A stretch of 64,000 bases of DNA, taken from assembly GCA_025558095.1 (NCBI GenBank), contig JAIVFI010000017.1, positions 248,001 to 312,000 of the forward strand, written 5' to 3'. The stretch comes from Hyaloraphidium curvatum SAG 235-1. Its lineage: Eukaryota; Fungi; Monoblepharomycota. The notes beneath the pieces are model-generated. The model was not told where the DNA came from, made no database searches, and worked only from the letters and a program-made list of their open reading frames with translations. Of this stretch, positions 6,453-11,772 are shown piece by piece. Each line of letters opens with the position of its first letter. Positions within the stretch are counted from its first letter, which is position 1. Position numbers and translations under genes: made by a program.

Positions 6453-8045
6453 ATGCGGCTCCCGGCGGGACTGCGGTTGCCGCCGTGGACGCGGCGGCCG
6501 CCCGCGTGGGCGGCGCGGCCCGTCATCCGGTGGGCGCTCGTGGCGGCGGCCGGCGCGCTCTTCTTCCTCGCGCACTCGGCGGGGCTGCTGCCGCCGCCGC
6601 CCGCGCTGCTCTCAGCCGGCGGCGCGCCGCCTCTGCTGCACGGCGGCGCGCGCATCGCGTCGGCCGTCGGCCCGCCCGCGCTCGCCGGCGCGCGCTGGAC
6701 AGACCTTTCCCGCACGCTCGCGCCGCCCGGCCGCGGCGAGCAGTTCGAGGCGTTCGACCTCTTTGCCGGCGTGTGCATCGACGTGCCCGACTCGCCCGAG
6801 CCGAAGAACCCCGTGGCCGCGTGGTTCGTCGGCGACGTGCCAAACAGGAGGCGCGCCGAGCGCGCCCTCGCGCGCGCCCTGGGCGGCCCGCGCGAGCCGC
6901 TGCCCGTGCTCCGCGGCGCGGACCCCAGGGCGGCCGGCCGTGCCGCAACGCGCTACCCCGGCCGGACCTACCTCCCAAACTGCCTGTGGTCGACCGTGCC
7001 CGGCGCGGGCCACCTGATGTTCGGCGCCAGCATGGCCATGGAGCTCGGGGAGCGCCCGCCAAAGGGCATGCACGCCCTGGACCGCGTGTCGATGGTCTGG
7101 TGCCCGCTGTGGCGGCGCTGGGAGGGCAAGATCTACTGGGACTTTGCCCGCAACGGCTGGGAGTTTGGCCGCACCGTGCTCGACCTGGTCTTTGCCCGGT
7201 GGCCCGCCGCGGGGCTGATCCCGGACCTGCGCGCCGAGCGCTTCCCCATCATGCGCGGCGTCTCGTGCTTCGACGAGCTCCTCGTCTCCCGGCGCGAGGG
7301 CGTCCTCCTCGCTCGCGCCGACTCGCGGCCCTTCCTGGAACGCCTCGCCGCCGCCGTCCCGGGCCACAACACCACCCTCCTCCCCGACCCCGGCAAGGCC
7401 GCCCGCCGCCTCGACGAGCGCTGCCGCTCGCGGCGCCTCCGCGCGGGCATCTTCCAGCGGCACCAGTTCCACCGCCACGTCAAGCTCAAGGAGCGGCGCT
7501 TCGTCAACCTCGACGACATCATCGGGCTGCTCGCCGACTTCACCTCCTCCCCCGTGGACGTGTTCGACGTGAACCACACCGTCCCCCTCGGGAGCCAGAT
7601 CGACCGCTTCGACGCCTACGACGTCCTCCTGACCCCCGTCGGCAGCCAGATGTCGGGCATGGTGCTGGTCGGCCCGCGCGCGCAGCGCGCGGTGGTCGAG
7701 ATCGGCGCGTGCGTGAGGGACACGTTCTGGAAGGAGAACGGGGACCGCCTGGGGTACCGCGCCTACGTCCTGTCGACGGGCCACGTGCCGGACGTGCCGC
7801 AGCTGGCCGACGCCATGGTCGGCTGCAGGTGGGCCGCGGTGGGGGACAACCCGGGCCCGGCGCTGTTCTGCCCGGCGCGGTGCGAGGTGACGGACGGGGA
7901 CCTGATGGTCAACACGACGCTGCTGCGGGCGCACCTGGAGTGGACGTTCGGGAGGATGTGCGACGAGGGGTGGAGGCCGCCGAGGGCGGCGCCGGACTTT
8001 TCGCGGGTGGGGTGCGCGGCGAACAGGGGGATGTGCGGGTGCTAG
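6453..8045 (+). CDS. Type II membrane glycosyltransferase, GT61/DUF563-like
   Basis: N-terminal TM (WALVAAAGALFFLA) and Pro-rich stem. C-terminal RRFVNLDDI...SQIDRFDAYDVLLTPVGSQMSGMVLV...VVEIG resembles the GT61 signature. Intronless. Confidence 0.6.
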   Translation: MRLPAGLRLPPWTRRPPAWAARPVIRWALVAAAGALFFLAHSAGLLPPPPALLSAGGAPPLLHGGARIASAVGPPALAGARWTDLSRTLAPPGRGEQFEAFDLFAGVCIDVPDSPEPKNPVAAWFVGDVPNRRRAERALARALGGPREPLPVLRGADPRAAGRAATRYPGRTYLPNCLWSTVPGAGHLMFGASMAMELGERPPKGMHALDRVSMVWCPLWRRWEGKIYWDFARNGWEFGRTVLDLVFARWPAAGLIPDLRAERFPIMRGVSCFDELLVSRREGVLLARADSRPFLERLAAAVPGHNTTLLPDPGKAARRLDERCRSRRLRAGIFQRHQFHRHVKLKERRFVNLDDIIGLLADFTSSPVDVFDVNHTVPLGSQIDRFDAYDVLLTPVGSQMSGMVLVGPRAQRAVVEIGACVRDTFWKENGDRLGYRAYVLSTGHVPDVPQLADAMVGCRWAAVGDNPGPALFCPARCEVTDGDLMVNTTLLRAHLEWTFGRMCDEGWRPPRAAPDFSRVGCAANRGMCGC

Positions 8046-8423
8046 GCTGCGCCGGGACGGGGACGGGACGGGGGCAACGGGGAGTGAGCGCGGTCGATGG
8101 GGTCGGATGGCTTGTAGGCGGCCGGACCAGCTAGAAAAACGACCGTGCGAAAGCGTGCGTTACACGGCCATGTTCTACTCGGCATTCCACGGCGAACACG
8201 GCGGGGAAGCGGTATCGGCATCAAGCCGTGTAGATAACTGCGCCCGCCCCGACCGGACGACGTGCAGGGCCATCGGATGTTCCGACCGGCCCGATGGTGC
8301 ATCGGATGCGACGGGCTGTCCGTGCCGTGCGCCACTCCGATCAGCAGCGTGCCCTGCGCGGAAGCGTCCAATCCGCCCAAGGCCAGTGCCTCCCGATCGC
8401 TTCCGAATCCGCCCGCCACCGAG

Positions 8424-9959
8424 CTACGGCCTCGACGGGCACACGTAATCCATCGTCAGGAACACCCCCAGCCCCCGCAGGATGGACCACAGCGCCACGA
8501 CGAGCGTCAGGATCGTCACCAGCACCGTCCGCACGATGCCGTACGTCACGGGGAACCCGAGCACCTTGGAGCGGTACCGGTCCGTGTCGGTGTAGCTCCG
8601 GAGCACCTCGGCGTCGGCGTCCATCGCGGCCAGCAGCGCGGGGTCCGGTCCCGGGTGGGGGGCGGAGGTGACGAGGCAGCGCCGCAGCTCCCCGAGCTCC
8701 TCCAGGGCGTCGAGGTACAGCTCACGGATGTCGGAGATCTGGGCGTTGGCGGCAGAGACGTTGAGCAGGTCGACGAGGAAGTTGGAAGTCCCAACGTAGA
8801 GCAGGTAGATCGGATACATCGCGGGAAGGCACGAACAGAACACCACGTTGAGCAGGCCCGATACGACCGCCGCCGAGACGCCGATCAGCATCGGAGAGCT
8901 GGCATTGTACTGCGCGGCGGCCTGCCGCCATAGGCACGCGAGGAGCCGGTGCAGCGCCATGTATCCGTCCCGTCCCGGTAGGAACCCTTCCCCGCCTCCA
9001 GATGCGCCTCCAGATGCACATGCAATCCTGTACCGTTCCATGGTGCTTCCTAGAGCGAGCCGCATCGCGCGCCGGTTGACGCGGCGGGAGAGCTGGAGCA
9101 GCGGGATGTTGGTGCTGAAGCGCACGCAGACGATGGGCACGAAGAAAATGAGGTATCCGACAATGAAGAAGACGGTGACGATCGCGGACCACGCGTTGCT
9201 CCACGTGCGGGGCAACGACACCGCGACGATCCAAATCTCCGAGAGAAAAAGCAGTGCCGTCAGCCCGCCCTTCGTGAGCAGTTCCGCGACGCGGGCGAGA
9301 CCTGCTTGCCGGGGCAGCTTCCCGGCGCACCGCGGGCCCGCACAGGAGCAGAGGGGATCCTTGTCCTCGTGTACGAGCAGGACGGGGTCCGTCGGGCCCG
9401 GGAGGGTTCCAACGAGGAGCTGGCTCCAGCGGGCTAGCCTCGCGGCGCCATGGGAGGAAAAATCCCGCGGCGGCGGGGCGGTGACCACCGTTCCGGCCCC
9501 AGCAGCGCGTCGCACGACGCTGAAGGAGCCCTGGTAAGCCGCGAAGAGGGAGGGCACGACGCCCGCCACGGTGCAAAAGAAGACCCAGCCGACCGTGCCA
9601 ACCGCGAGCTGCACGGTCCCGTACGCGTCCCGACCCAGGATCCACGGGACGACGGGCAACGCTGCGGCCGAAAGCCACATCCAGACGTTGCGTAGGATGA
9701 AACTGCGCGCCAACGGCTCGAGGGCGACCTGCAGCCGCACTGTCGCGGCCAGCACGCCCGAGCGGCGCGACAGCGCGCCGACGAAGGCGTCGAAGCCCAG
9801 CGGCGATTCGGCGCGCGCCTCGGCGGCGGGATCGGGCGGCGGCGGGGCGCCGGGCACCCCGGGGGACCACGACACGGGCGCGGGCAGTACCACGAGCCAT
9901 TCCGCGCCGTCGAGCCGAAACGCGGCGGGCGCAGCGTCGATCTTCACGTCGTCCGCCAT
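8424..9959 (-). CDS. 7-TM protein, putative gustatory-receptor-like / DUF3537-like 7TM ion channel (paralog A), 511 aa, intronless
   Basis: Seven hydrophobic segments. C-terminus YRSKVLGFPVTYGIVRTVLVTILTLVVALWSILRGLGVFLTMDYVCP is clearly paralogous to the gene at 10106-11772. Confidence 0.7.
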   Translation of the reverse strand: MADDVKIDAAPAAFRLDGAEWLVVLPAPVSWSPGVPGAPPPPDPAAEARAESPLGFDAFVGALSRRSGVLAATVRLQVALEPLARSFILRNVWMWLSAAALPVVPWILGRDAYGTVQLAVGTVGWVFFCTVAGVVPSLFAAYQGSFSVVRRAAGAGTVVTAPPPRDFSSHGAARLARWSQLLVGTLPGPTDPVLLVHEDKDPLCSCAGPRCAGKLPRQAGLARVAELLTKGGLTALLFLSEIWIVAVSLPRTWSNAWSAIVTVFFIVGYLIFFVPIVCVRFSTNIPLLQLSRRVNRRAMRLALGSTMERYRIACASGGASGGGEGFLPGRDGYMALHRLLACLWRQAAAQYNASSPMLIGVSAAVVSGLLNVVFCSCLPAMYPIYLLYVGTSNFLVDLLNVSAANAQISDIRELYLDALEELGELRRCLVTSAPHPGPDPALLAAMDADAEVLRSYTDTDRYRSKVLGFPVTYGIVRTVLVTILTLVVALWSILRGLGVFLTMDYVCPSRP

Positions 9960-10105
9960 TGCGGCCAGGTTCTGCGGCGGCGGTGTGGGCGGGCGGGATT
10001 ACGGGATCCGGAGGCAGCCACGCGCCGAGTGCGATCTTCCGCGAGGAAACTTCACTGGCAAGGCGCCTTTGCCGCGATAGGACGAGCTTCTGTCGATCCT
10101 TTACA
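9960..10105. promoter_or_regulatory. Putative bidirectional promoter between the two 7-TM paralogs
   Basis: Only 146 bp separate the divergent ATGs at 9959 and 10106. Confidence 0.5.
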
Positions 10106-11772
10106 ATGAGCGGAACCGAGAAAACCCACGACGCCACCGCCGGAACCGATGCCGTCGCGCCCGGCGTCCCAGCTTCCTTTGCCTCACAGGCCGACTCGCG
10201 CGTCCCGGACGCCGACTTCACCCCCGAAGAATGGGTGTGCCTATTTCCCGCCGCGGCGCCGCCCTTCCGGCCTCTGCTGCCCGACGAGGAATCCGGGGAG
10301 GCGGGGCGCGATCCCTCCGAAGAGTTCCGAAAAGCGAACCCAGTGACGCTCGAAACCATGCTGGAAGAGTTTGACAACCCAGTGCTTCGCTTCTTTGCTT
10401 GTCTCGGCGCGTCTCGAAGTGCGAGCTTTTTGGGCTGGAGGATGGCTTGCCAGACGGGACTCGGGTTCTGCATGATGCTGGTCTTCCAGGGGCTGGCCTG
10501 GTCTTGGAACGATGGCCTCTTCGGGACGAAGCAGATGATAGCAGGTGTGACTTCCCTGACAGCGTTGGCTTTTGCCGCCGTTGGCACGTTCGTGCTCGTC
10601 GCGGTGAACATGCCCAAAGTGCCGAAGGTACTGGATTTTGCCGCGCCCGCGGTGCTCTGCAGATGGCTGCAGGTGGGCAAAAAGACAGAGCAAGAAGGAC
10701 AGAAGTCTGGCTCGACGCTTGAGGGAACCCAAAGCCTCCTCGCGCACGAAGAGGGCGACCGATTCTGTCCGTGCTCCAGCTGCATCGGCAACGTGCAGCA
10801 GCTTGCGGGTTTCATGACCTTCTTGGACATCACATTGAATTTCGTGCTCAACTTTCTTTTCACCTGGACCGCAGGATGGACCGCGTGGGTCACGTACGGC
10901 TCCAAGCTGTGGTCCACGTGGTGGGGTTGCGTTCTCGCGGCAATCGATGGTCAGGCAACCGCACGTCCTTCGCAGGGAGCATTTACTCTGACATATTTGC
11001 CTTCCTTCCGTTTGCAGTTTGTGCTGCTGTGGCCTACATAATGAACTCTGCCTGTCGCTTCGTTGGCATCGCCAACATTGCATACGCGAGGCTGGAAGCA
11101 AGACTCCACCACCGCGCCGTCGTCCTCTCCATGAGATCTATGCTGGAAACTGTGCTCAGCGGCCGTTCGGCTAGCCAGGCGCCGTGGCTGTACGTTCGAC
11201 AGCACCGCAACTTTGCAGCGTGGTGCAAGATCCGCGAGATTCAGGACCAGACCCTGCTCAGTAACTCCGTGTTTGTCATCCTGTTCCCCTTGGCCATCGT
11301 CGCTATCATAGTCAATGTTGTGAGTGAAAACTGGACGGGTGAGCGTGAAACGGGTGCTGACTCTGGTGCCATCCTGCAGGCCGTCGGGTCCTGCATCCCG
11401 GCGTGGCTTCTCTTTCTCACTTGTACCATCATGCTCTACATGCTGGTCAACGCCGTCAACCTCACCTCGCGCAACAACCTCATCTCCGTGGTCGCATCGG
11501 CGTACCACGACGGCCGCCGCGACCTCCGCACCGCGTGCCTCAAACTCGGCCCGACCCCGCTCGCTGCCTCGCTGGAGCAGCACGACCGGGTCATCGGTTC
11601 GTTCCTCGAGGTGTCGCGATACAGCGCCAAGATCCTGGGGTTCACCGTCTCGTACGGGGGCGTGCGGACGATGCTTGTGACGCTGGTCACCCTCATGGTG
11701 GCCTTGTGGAGCGTGTTCCGGTCGCTGGGGGTGTTCTTCACCATGGAGAGCTTCTGCCCGATTGTATCGTAG
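10106..11772 (+). CDS. 7-TM protein, putative gustatory-receptor-like / DUF3537-like 7TM ion channel (paralog B), introns 10950-11017 and 11320-11379
   Basis: Splicing joins ORFs 9959 and 10771 in frame. C-terminus YSAKILGFTVSYGGVRTMLVTLVTLMVALWSVFRSLGVFFTMESFCP. Removing the 60-nt intron gives IIVNV|AVGSCIPAW, matching LLNVVFCSCLPAM in paralog A. Confidence 0.7.

Follow-up and report, generated by a model that had tools for sequence, protein, structure and literature searches.

Two divergent genes of Hyaloraphidium curvatum belong to a large sequence-orphan family predicted to adopt the 7TMIC fold

Gene pair, splicing and transcripts

The window analysed here, a 64,000-nucleotide stretch of the Hyaloraphidium curvatum SAG 235-1 genome, harbors two genes, A and B (Table 1). 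Open reading frames and sequence agree with an earlier note on this DNA in identifying them as divergent paralogs with start codons 146 bp apart. Gene A is 33% identical to the C-terminal half of B (E 6e-26), and the family profile matches both parts of B (E 1e-32 and 8e-38); in these comparisons, the exons of gene B were used piece by piece and not as a joined protein. Similarity peaks at the C-terminus, as previously noted, with the highest identity over the last ~70 residues, and the C-terminal motif quoted at that time is present in both proteins. Both genes are transcribed. An unspliced RNA contig over gene A spans 8300-9797, and a contig over gene B starts at 10062 or further upstream and runs to 10948/9, with no RNA contig depth at 9873-9993. 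The 146-bp spacer must comprise a bidirectional promoter and 5'UTR region.

Gene B does not consist of one or two open reading frames; the RNA contigs resolve it into three exons instead. Intron 2 contains no stop codons and keeps the reading frame, and is therefore invisible to ORF reading. Its site, at approximately profile position 365 and directly before a GSCxPA motif, is common to other family members, exon breaks at profile positions 365/366 being seen in other family loci, and a 20-aa gap in the profile alignment of gene B coincides with this intron.

Table 1. Genes, exons, introns and notable regions of the locus (window positions)
Feature	Position	Strand	Description and evidence
Gene A	8424-9959	minus	intronless CDS, single ORF, 511 aa; coordinates include the stop codon
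Gene A, TM7a/linker/TM7b	8472-8642	minus	residues 440-496; by AF2 model secondary structure, TM7a 440-456 (cytosolic), hairpin-like linker 457-472, TM7b 473-496 (membrane; candidate pore helix)
Gene A, H-x3-D-x2-C-x-C-x4-C motif	9327-9371	minus	residues 197-211, in the long TM2-TM3 loop
Spacer between start codons	9960-10105		146 bp; sequence
Gene B	10106-11772	plus	ATG at 10106, stop at 11770-11772; three exons, 512 aa
Gene B, exon 1	10106-10949	plus	N-terminus to start of TM4; profile match (E 1e-32), RNA contig
Gene B, variant motif H-x3-D-x2-CPC-x2-C	10745-10783	plus	within exon 1
Gene B, intron 1	10950-11017	plus	68 nt, GT..AG, phase 1; skipped in RNA contig
Gene B, exon 2	11018-11319	plus	TM4, its cytosolic extension, TM5; RNA contig, profile match
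Gene B, intron 2	11320-11379	plus	60 nt, GT..AG, phase 0; skipped in RNA contig
Gene B, exon 3	11380-11772	plus	TM6, TM7a, hairpin, TM7b, C-terminal tail, stop; profile match (E 8e-38), RNA contigs
Gene B, TM7b region	~11626-11769	plus	within exon 3

Membrane topology and predicted fold

Hydropathy of gene A, of the pieces of B and of a 72-member profile bears out the seven hydrophobic segments reported earlier, and helices are found in two AF2 models. The described alternation of short and long loops is also present across the 72 paralogs, with mean lengths of 11.6, 7.9 and 7.0 aa for TM1-2, TM3-4 and TM5-6, compared with 80.5, 74.8 and 65.9 aa for TM2-3, TM4-5 and TM6-7; the loops assigned as intracellular are thus longer than those assigned as extracellular. 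Lysine plus arginine counts in the same paralogs average 3.6 at the N-terminus and 8.6, 9.6 and 7.9 in loops 2, 4 and 6, but 0.9, 0.3 and 0.1 in loops 1, 3 and 5 and 0.5 in the C-terminal tail. By the positive-inside rule, the N-in orientation of the earlier note is predicted over the 72 paralogs, showing at this level of prediction an N-in, C-out protein with short outer and long inner loops.

The AF2 model of gene A reached a pLDDT of 91.9 and a pTM of 0.91, and that of P0142, a paralog 27% identical to A, reached 89.4 and 0.89, with one alignment and one method common to both. In the Foldseek check that the earlier note had called for, all matches with a probability of at least 0.84 are odorant or gustatory receptors (OR or GR), with E-values of 0.012-0.3 and TM-scores of 0.27-0.48, and the full-length structural matches of both models are exclusively insect OR/GR/Orco channels. 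A protein language model search returned DUF3537 as the first neighbour with a name. In addition, an ESM Atlas shape search gave TM-scores of 0.53-0.54 to two unnamed clusters, one of them mainly arthropod, which is suggestive but without clear interpretation.

The two models show long predicted TM4, TM5 and TM6 helices that continue into the cytosol (residues 256-315, 331-375 and 381-432 in A; 259-318, 331-374 and 379-426 in P0142), and in structural alignments of both models these cytosolic stretches align with OR/GR chains. They also show a TM7 divided into a cytosolic 7a and a membrane 7b, the P0142 model containing a helix at 433-452, a linker and a helix at 464-487. In the N-terminal region, where an S0 helix or TM0 re-entrant element would be expected of a 7TMIC, the structural alignments begin at model residues 52-70, corresponding to receptor residues 1-16, and helices 56-66 and 68-85 lie ahead of TM1 in the gene A model.

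Sequence searches did not recover these relationships. No Pfam match at E≤1 other than noise was obtained for A, the pieces of B or any of the 72 paralogs, including to 7tm_7 (PF08395), 7tm_6 (PF02949) and DUF3537 (PF12056); a profile search of PDB chain sequences returned nothing relevant, and HMM searches of the H. curvatum genome with PF12056 and PF08395, run without a positive control, gave no matches. The GR signature TYhhhhhQF is missing from the family TM7b, for which the consensus is R-T-x2-V-T-x2-T-V-x-V-G-L-W-S; of the signature, a threonine alone is retained, with no match at the Y, Q and F positions.

Family size and sequence variation

The 32-Mb H. curvatum genome contains more than 300 loci of the family to which A and B belong. 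A DNA motif census found 313 loci for the His/Cys motif pattern versus 1 for the control, 318 cluster representatives were collected at E≤1e-3, and each genome search returned at least 86-151 family matches. The family is also present in a second fungus (sequencing run SRR26194948). A word-indexed protein search with A, the alignment and the foreign homolog P0068 as queries brought up nothing beyond the query or its nearest paralogs, and so did not inform on taxonomic range. In one paralog pair (C12:253718/255794), one copy is frameshifted.

Column entropy is lowest in TM7b (1.68 bits), where R477, T482, T485, G/A489 and W491 are conserved and threonine and small residues follow a helical periodicity, and highest in the membrane parts of TM1, TM2 and TM4 (3.04-3.09 bits). 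H197, C204, C206 and C211 are invariant across the 72 paralogs, and D201 is retained in 69 of them. This histidine and the three cysteines, in the predicted cytosolic TM2-TM3 loop, are a candidate zinc site. C377 (TM5-6 loop) and C507 (tail), predicted to be extracellular, may form a disulfide. Young paralogs are under purifying selection, with an overall dN/dS of 0.31 and 0.41 in two pairs, peaking at 0.89 and 0.70 in the TM3-TM4 membrane part.

Proposed function and related receptor families

The seven-transmembrane ion channels (7TMICs), a superfamily defined at the level of fold (PMC9998090; bioRxiv 10.1101/2023.08.30.555482), include the OR and GR proteins of insects as well as GRLs, DUF3537 and PHTF proteins. 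With a probability of about 0.7, A and B, both transcribed, represent a sequence-orphan family with more than 300 loci that has the 7TMIC fold and is predicted to act as ligand-gated sensors. Such proteins would assemble as tetramers held through cytosolic anchor helices, around a cation pore lined by TM7b, where the conserved T478, T482, T485, G489 and S492 on one side of the helix may form the pore face and an aromatic residue at 491 would lie close to the outer end. A ligand pocket formed from the variable membrane parts of TM1-TM4 would have diversified through gene birth and death, the invariant histidine and cysteines of the TM2-TM3 loop probably bind zinc, and the outcome would be a large set of ligand-gated sensors for dissolved compounds. 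Anchor packing, zinc site, disulfide and pore face are all read entirely from secondary structure, periodicity and topology.

The proposal that A and B are seven-TM chemoreceptor-channel candidates therefore stands with respect to TM number, N-in orientation and OR/GR/Orco fold matches, whereas its heteromer does not and its chemosensory part was overstated. As to the accompanying claim of an undescribed system in a zoosporic lineage, the literature search found no paper describing the family; however, H. curvatum is a monoblepharid fungus described as non-flagellated (PMC8371127), so that zoospore chemotaxis is not an obvious role, and single 7TMIC genes are known from chytrids (PMC7746228). 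A more far-reaching version, to which we give somewhat less than even odds, holds that several hundred ligand-gated 7TMICs are present in Hyaloraphidium and in one or more related fungi. The OR/GR fold would then have expanded independently, on an insect-like scale, in a non-motile unicellular fungus, with a cytosolic zinc-binding loop as an additional regulatory module, and the channels would sense dissolved nutrients, algal exudates or kin signals.

An unlikely alternative is that the family shares the fold but does another job, its members being membrane scaffolds, constitutive channels, or proteins resembling scramblases or transporters; such roles are also conceivable for PHTF and DUF3537 proteins. 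The fold match is silent on activity, the GR gating motif is missing, OR/GR proteins have nothing equivalent to the His/Cys3 loop, and the non-flagellated host (PMC8371127) also fits this reading. However, more than 300 diverging copies keep the predicted pore and anchor while TM1-4 vary, and protein change is fastest in TM3-TM4, a pattern indicative of a receptor repertoire rather than of housekeeping proteins. Counting against the main reading, the Pfam and PDB profile searches show no sequence-level link to any known 7TMIC, the Foldseek E-values and TM-scores are modest, both models share an alignment and a method, and, the organism being non-motile, chemoreception has no evident behavioural output. 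It is improbable that this is simply a new fungal 7-TM family without homology, its likeness to OR/GR arising from convergent helical packing or AlphaFold bias.

It is very improbable that A and B encode the subunits of a heteromeric channel and are co-expressed from the shared 146-bp promoter, as in OR plus Orco. Consistent with such pairing, RNA contigs of both genes occur in one run, the two genes come from distant subfamilies (33% identity), and an A-like gene adjoins a B-like gene on contig C30. However, that pair is tail-to-tail and thus has no common promoter, at least one other head-to-head pair arose as a young inverted duplication (80% identity), and no single conserved co-receptor is evident. 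Moreover, in a sample of 29 loci, 22 lack another family member within 1.5 kb, the other seven being divergent (3), convergent (2) or tandem (2). Divergent, tandem and convergent pairs number 5, 6 and 2 among the first 100 motif loci listed, which fits a random 1:2:1 ratio. Divergent pairing is therefore not a family trait, and the shared promoter, which had been regarded as the mark of an OR/Orco-like heteromer, loses that meaning, pairing being rare and orientation random; as head-to-head pairing is not a family rule, the heteromer idea is unsupported. For A and B, local duplication in a compact genome best accounts for the head-to-head arrangement, which would then be a by-product.

Identity as GPCRs, or as any other class of classical 7-TM receptor, is suggested by the TM count of seven alone and can be dismissed, since the positive-inside rule places the N-terminus inside and the C-terminus outside, no GPCR Pfam family was matched, and with neither model does a GPCR, rhodopsin or PAQR chain rank among the best 50 of 48,161; topology and fold matches exclude GPCR and transporter identities. 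Thus, the TM count is seven, the predicted orientation is N-in, and no credible GPCR or transporter fold match was found, leaving the initial fold assignment in place.

If the predicted ligand-gated channel reading is true, the family represents a very large repertoire of insect-type receptors outside animals, and a massive, insect-like diversification of the 7TMIC fold would have occurred there as well. A culturable unicellular system with hundreds of natural variants could then be used to ask what ancestral 7TMICs detect and how their gating works, and the invariant His/Cys3 loop would be a testable addition to the fold. Such families escape Pfam and BLAST, and structure-based detection is needed to find them.

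The fold comparators are the solved structures of insect OR/GR/Orco proteins (AaegOR10 8v00/8v02, MhOR5 7lic, BmGr9 8vc1, DmGr43a 8jm9 and Orco 6c70). The Hyaloraphidium family differs from them in its 7-12% sequence identity, with no Pfam 7tm_6 or 7tm_7 match, in lacking TYhhhhhQF, the GR TM7 signature (PMC11100771), and in its fungal host, where a channel role is predicted only. Beyond the insect proteins, it has ~50 additional conserved residues at the N-terminus, and its TM2-TM3 loop, ~85 aa long, contains the invariant His/Cys3 motif. The unicellular GRLs and plant DUF3537 proteins (Benton et al. 2020, PMC7746228) are likewise non-animal and have the same predicted topology and fold, and chytrid GRLs, like the Hyaloraphidium family, keep one of four TM7 motif positions. 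However, the DUF3537 HMM matches neither the Hyaloraphidium proteins nor, in the genome search without a positive control, the genome. In the literature consulted, non-animal 7TMICs form small families, and no ligand is known for any (PMC7746228): Spizellomyces punctatus and S. palustris have one GRL each, Thecamonas and Vitrella six each, and plants 4-12 DUF3537 genes (PMC7746228), giving 1-12 members per genome compared with more than 300 loci in H. curvatum. PHTF-like 'Class-B' 7TMICs are reported from Chytridiomycota, Blastocladiomycota and others by Himmel et al. 2023 (bioRxiv 10.1101/2023.08.30.555482), where neither a comparable expansion nor a His/Cys3 loop motif is described in the text consulted; within fungi they occur, as here, in early-diverging zoosporic lineages only.

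Gene structures and transcription of the divergent pair

The earlier note described genes A and B as divergent paralogs 146 bp apart with similarity peaking at the C-terminus. The ORF of A, the ATG of B and a pairwise identity of 33% between A and the C-terminal half of B (E 6e-26) bear out this arrangement, and identity reaches ~70% over the last ~50 residues, where both proteins carry the motif quoted in that note. Intron 1 of B was predicted first from a frame change and afterwards matched exactly by contigs of X1, a public sequencing run covering both genes. Intron 2 is in frame and lacks a stop codon, and was therefore not revealed by ORF reading; it is exactly the 20-residue insertion left unaligned by the family profile, which falls in the TM5-TM6 loop when the intron is read through, and an intron at this profile position (~365) is shared by several further members of the family. 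B was compared with the family exon by exon, and structure models were made from A and the paralog P0142.

Features of genes A and B, the nearest paralog of B, and conserved positions of the last membrane helix (window coordinates unless a contig, C17 = JAIVFI010000017.1, or a genome stretch, L034, is named; TM7b residues in gene A numbering)
Feature	Position	Strand	Description
Gene A	8424-9959	-	uninterrupted ORF, 511 codons
Spacer between A and B start codons	9960-10105		exactly 146 bp
Gene B start ATG	10106	+	
Gene B exons	10106-10949, 11018-11319, 11380-11772	+	three, encoding 512 aa
Gene B intron 1	10950-11017	+	68 nt, GT..AG; skipped in RNA contig
Gene B intron 2	11320-11379	+	60 nt, GT..AG; skipped in RNA contigs, in frame, stop-free
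Nearest paralog of B	C17:245404-247074 (L034:2404-4074)	-	~1-2.6 kb left of window start
TM7b residue	477		R in 68/72 paralogs
TM7b residue	478		T in 40/72 paralogs
TM7b residue	482		T in 59/72 paralogs
TM7b residue	485		T in 71/72 paralogs
TM7b residue	489		G in 47/72, A in 23/72 paralogs
TM7b residue	491		W in 52/72, F in 11/72, Y in 4/72 paralogs
TM7b residue	495		R in 64/72 paralogs

The public protein model of A (418 aa) begins at Met94, inside TM1. We argue that the true start is Met1 at 9959, because the X1 RNA contig extends to codon 55, no further ATG besides Met1 lies upstream of Met94, and residues 1-93 are conserved in paralogs and modelled with high confidence by AlphaFold2; the deposited gene model is probably truncated (window 9678-9959, minus strand).

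Because its contigs are spliced, X1 must have been read from RNA. Contigs cover B from 10062 onward and A, unspliced, from beyond 8300 to 9797, with no contig depth over 9873-9993; both genes are transcribed in the same sample, the contigs showing transcript presence and splicing, not levels or true 5' ends. The untranscribed stretch between the genes is at most ~260 bp, making a bidirectional promoter unavoidable. On its other side, the RNA contig of A continues 938 nt left of 8300 (window ~7362-8300) into the 3' part of a convergent plus-strand ORF ending at 8045; the two transcripts probably meet or overlap at their 3' ends.

Topology and fold of the encoded proteins

Seven hydrophobic segments, as noted earlier, are found in A, in the pieces of B and when 72 paralogs are averaged into one profile, and the alternation of short and long loops holds across these paralogs, with mean lengths of 11.6, 80.5, 7.9, 74.8, 7.0 and 65.9 aa for loops 1-6. 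Lysine and arginine are concentrated in the N-terminal flank (3.6 per protein) and in loops 2, 4 and 6 (8.6, 9.6 and 7.9), with 0.9, 0.3, 0.1 and 0.5 in loops 1, 3, 5 and the tail. By the positive-inside rule, this distribution supports the proposed N-in topology, predicting a cytosolic N-terminus and an external C-terminus, the reverse of the GPCR orientation.

None of the 72 family members matched Pfam, and a profile search against all PDB sequences gave no match. The AlphaFold2 model of A, built with the 72-sequence alignment, reached a pLDDT of 91.9 and a pTM of 0.91, and a replicate model of P0142 (27% identical to A) reached 89.4 and 0.89, the two sharing one method and one alignment. 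Both models contain long helices TM4 (256-315 in A numbering), TM5 (331-375) and TM6 (381-432), and the split TM7 anticipated in the earlier note appears in both, with a hairpin-like linker joining a short cytosolic helix (440-456) to the last membrane helix (473-496). This matches the layout of long TM4-6 and split TM7a/7b that defines seven-transmembrane ion channels (7TMICs) in PMC11100771 and in bioRxiv 10.1101/2023.08.30.555482. The 7TMIC-like fold also emerged from Foldseek, by match rank and by probability, with values of 0.84-1.00 for OR/GR only, these matches being weak otherwise (E-value 0.012-0.3, TM-score 0.27-0.48); structural comparison gave an rmsd of 5-6 A, and the first annotated neighbour in a language-model search was DUF3537. 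All fold-level features of 7TMICs that could be tested were found, and we put the probability that the modelled fold is of the 7TMIC kind at about 0.85. At the sequence level, the family is placed outside 7tm_6, 7tm_7 and DUF3537.

Conserved segments and candidate mechanism

Column entropy across the 72 paralogs is lowest in TM7b (1.68 bits), next lowest in the His/Cys loop (1.91), then in the TM5-6 loop (1.97) and in the tail (2.03), and highest in the membrane-embedded stretches of TM1, TM2 and TM4 (3.04-3.09). ORs and other 7TMICs are described as having this same pattern, in which the pore helix and anchor are conserved and the outer bundle varies (bioRxiv 10.1101/2023.08.30.555482). The hydroxyl or small residues at 478, 482, 485, 489 and 492 are spaced 3-4 apart and thus lie on one helical face, and TM7b recalls the hydroxyl ring and aromatic gate of BmGr9 (PMC11100771). 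The GR motif TYhhhhhQF is absent from TM7b of the 72 paralogs.

Overall dN/dS in two young paralog pairs (0.31 and 0.41) indicates purifying selection on both copies. Within this sample of two pairs, indicative at best, the ratio is highest in the TM3-TM4 membrane region (0.89 and 0.70), low in TM6cyt-TM7a (0.26, 0.19) and variable in the TM7b region (0.18, 0.39).

H197, C204, C206 and C211 never vary among the 72 paralogs, 69 of which also have D201. The N-in topology would place the four invariant residues on the cytosolic side, where the His/Cys3 cluster most plausibly forms a candidate zinc-binding site. Outside, C377 of the TM5-6 loop is invariant and C507 of the tail is present in 70/72 paralogs. 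A C377-C507 disulfide is plausible, since both models predict two short strands, one containing C377 (377-379) and the other followed by C507 (500-502). That the proteins serve as ligand-gated channels used as chemoreceptors is a tentative reading, which we rate at even odds or slightly below.

Family size, gene turnover and relation to known systems

The closest proteins are all annotated 'hypothetical protein DFJ74DRAFT' of Hyaloraphidium curvatum, an unusual fungus that lacks flagella and is assigned to Monoblepharidomycota (PMC8371127). In a full HMMER scan of 1.84 billion representatives, 318 family proteins reached E<=1e-3, of which 246 also reached E<=1e-10; 17 of 20 looked up came from H. 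curvatum. Profile searches of this genome, each starting with 554-897 first-look candidates, gave at least 87, 93, 151 and 86 matches. The genome-wide paralog count suggested earlier was run with the invariant loop motif H-x3-D-x2-C-x-C-x4-C written as a DNA pattern, which matched 313 times in the 31.9-Mb genome versus once for the reversed-pattern control. This is a lower bound (B, with a two-residue deletion in its motif, is uncounted), and the family thus comprises >300 loci. The remaining three proteins came from Logan assembly SRR26194948, whose family contigs (L031, L032, L033; ~54% GC) gave no meaningful DNA match to the H. curvatum genome. They carry at least four family genes, two in tandem on L031, and the assembly's YVC1-type channel gene is 57-66% identical to that of H. 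curvatum, showing that the family is present in at least one related but distinct fungus.

The proposal that A and B form a heteromeric pair with a common promoter gained no support, as nothing marks the two out as obligate partners. When the 29 distinct loci closest to A in sequence were scanned with 1.5-kb flanks, a family neighbour turned up at seven (three divergent, two convergent, two tandem). Among the first 100 motif matches listed, pairs within 5 kb (counted by eye) comprised five divergent, six tandem and two convergent, no different from 1:2:1, and about three quarters of the loci were solitary; divergent pairing is accordingly not a family habit. A head-to-head pair on contig C14 is 80% identical and therefore a young inverted duplicate, an A-like gene adjoins a B-like gene tail to tail on C30, and the closest relative of B (78.6% DNA identity, same three exons) lies 11 kb away, just outside the window. 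The A/B layout is what would be expected where genes in a compact genome duplicate locally by birth and death.

Several copies bear marks of decay or recent copying. The nearest paralog of B has an apparent frameshift in its last ~12 codons and could be a pseudogene of recent origin, or the assembly may be in error here; a further family fragment lies nearby (L034:132-362). Profile matches of the copies at C12:252300-257300 (L036) and C11:616300-618900 (L041) are spread over two or three different frames, these copies being either frameshifted pseudogenes or genes with unannotated introns, and several B-like copies contain in-frame stops; such copies fit birth-and-death turnover. Convergent loci 4.2 kb apart at C10:808980-809024 (+) and 813173-813217 (-) share identical 45-nt motif sequences and, in the stretch L039, the same partial profile match on both strands, as if a partial copy had been duplicated in inverted orientation very recently. 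B-like copies at C17:638628-639278 and 659809-660559 and at C47:84097-84747 and 105280-106030 have identical scores and identities and the same spacing; C47 seems to duplicate part of C17 or to be its haplotig.

Our literature search found no paper on this family, or on Hyaloraphidium in a 7TMIC context. In the literature found, one source being available in part, fungal 7TMIC-type proteins appear only as GRLs, reported from two species of Spizellomyces with a single gene each (PMC7746228), and as PHTF-like Class-B proteins, reported in Chytridiomycota and Blastocladiomycota (bioRxiv 10.1101/2023.08.30.555482). Non-animal 7TMIC families have 1-12 members (PMC7746228), in contrast to the >300 loci of the H. 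curvatum family, which would represent a new, very strongly expanded variant within the 7TMIC kind.
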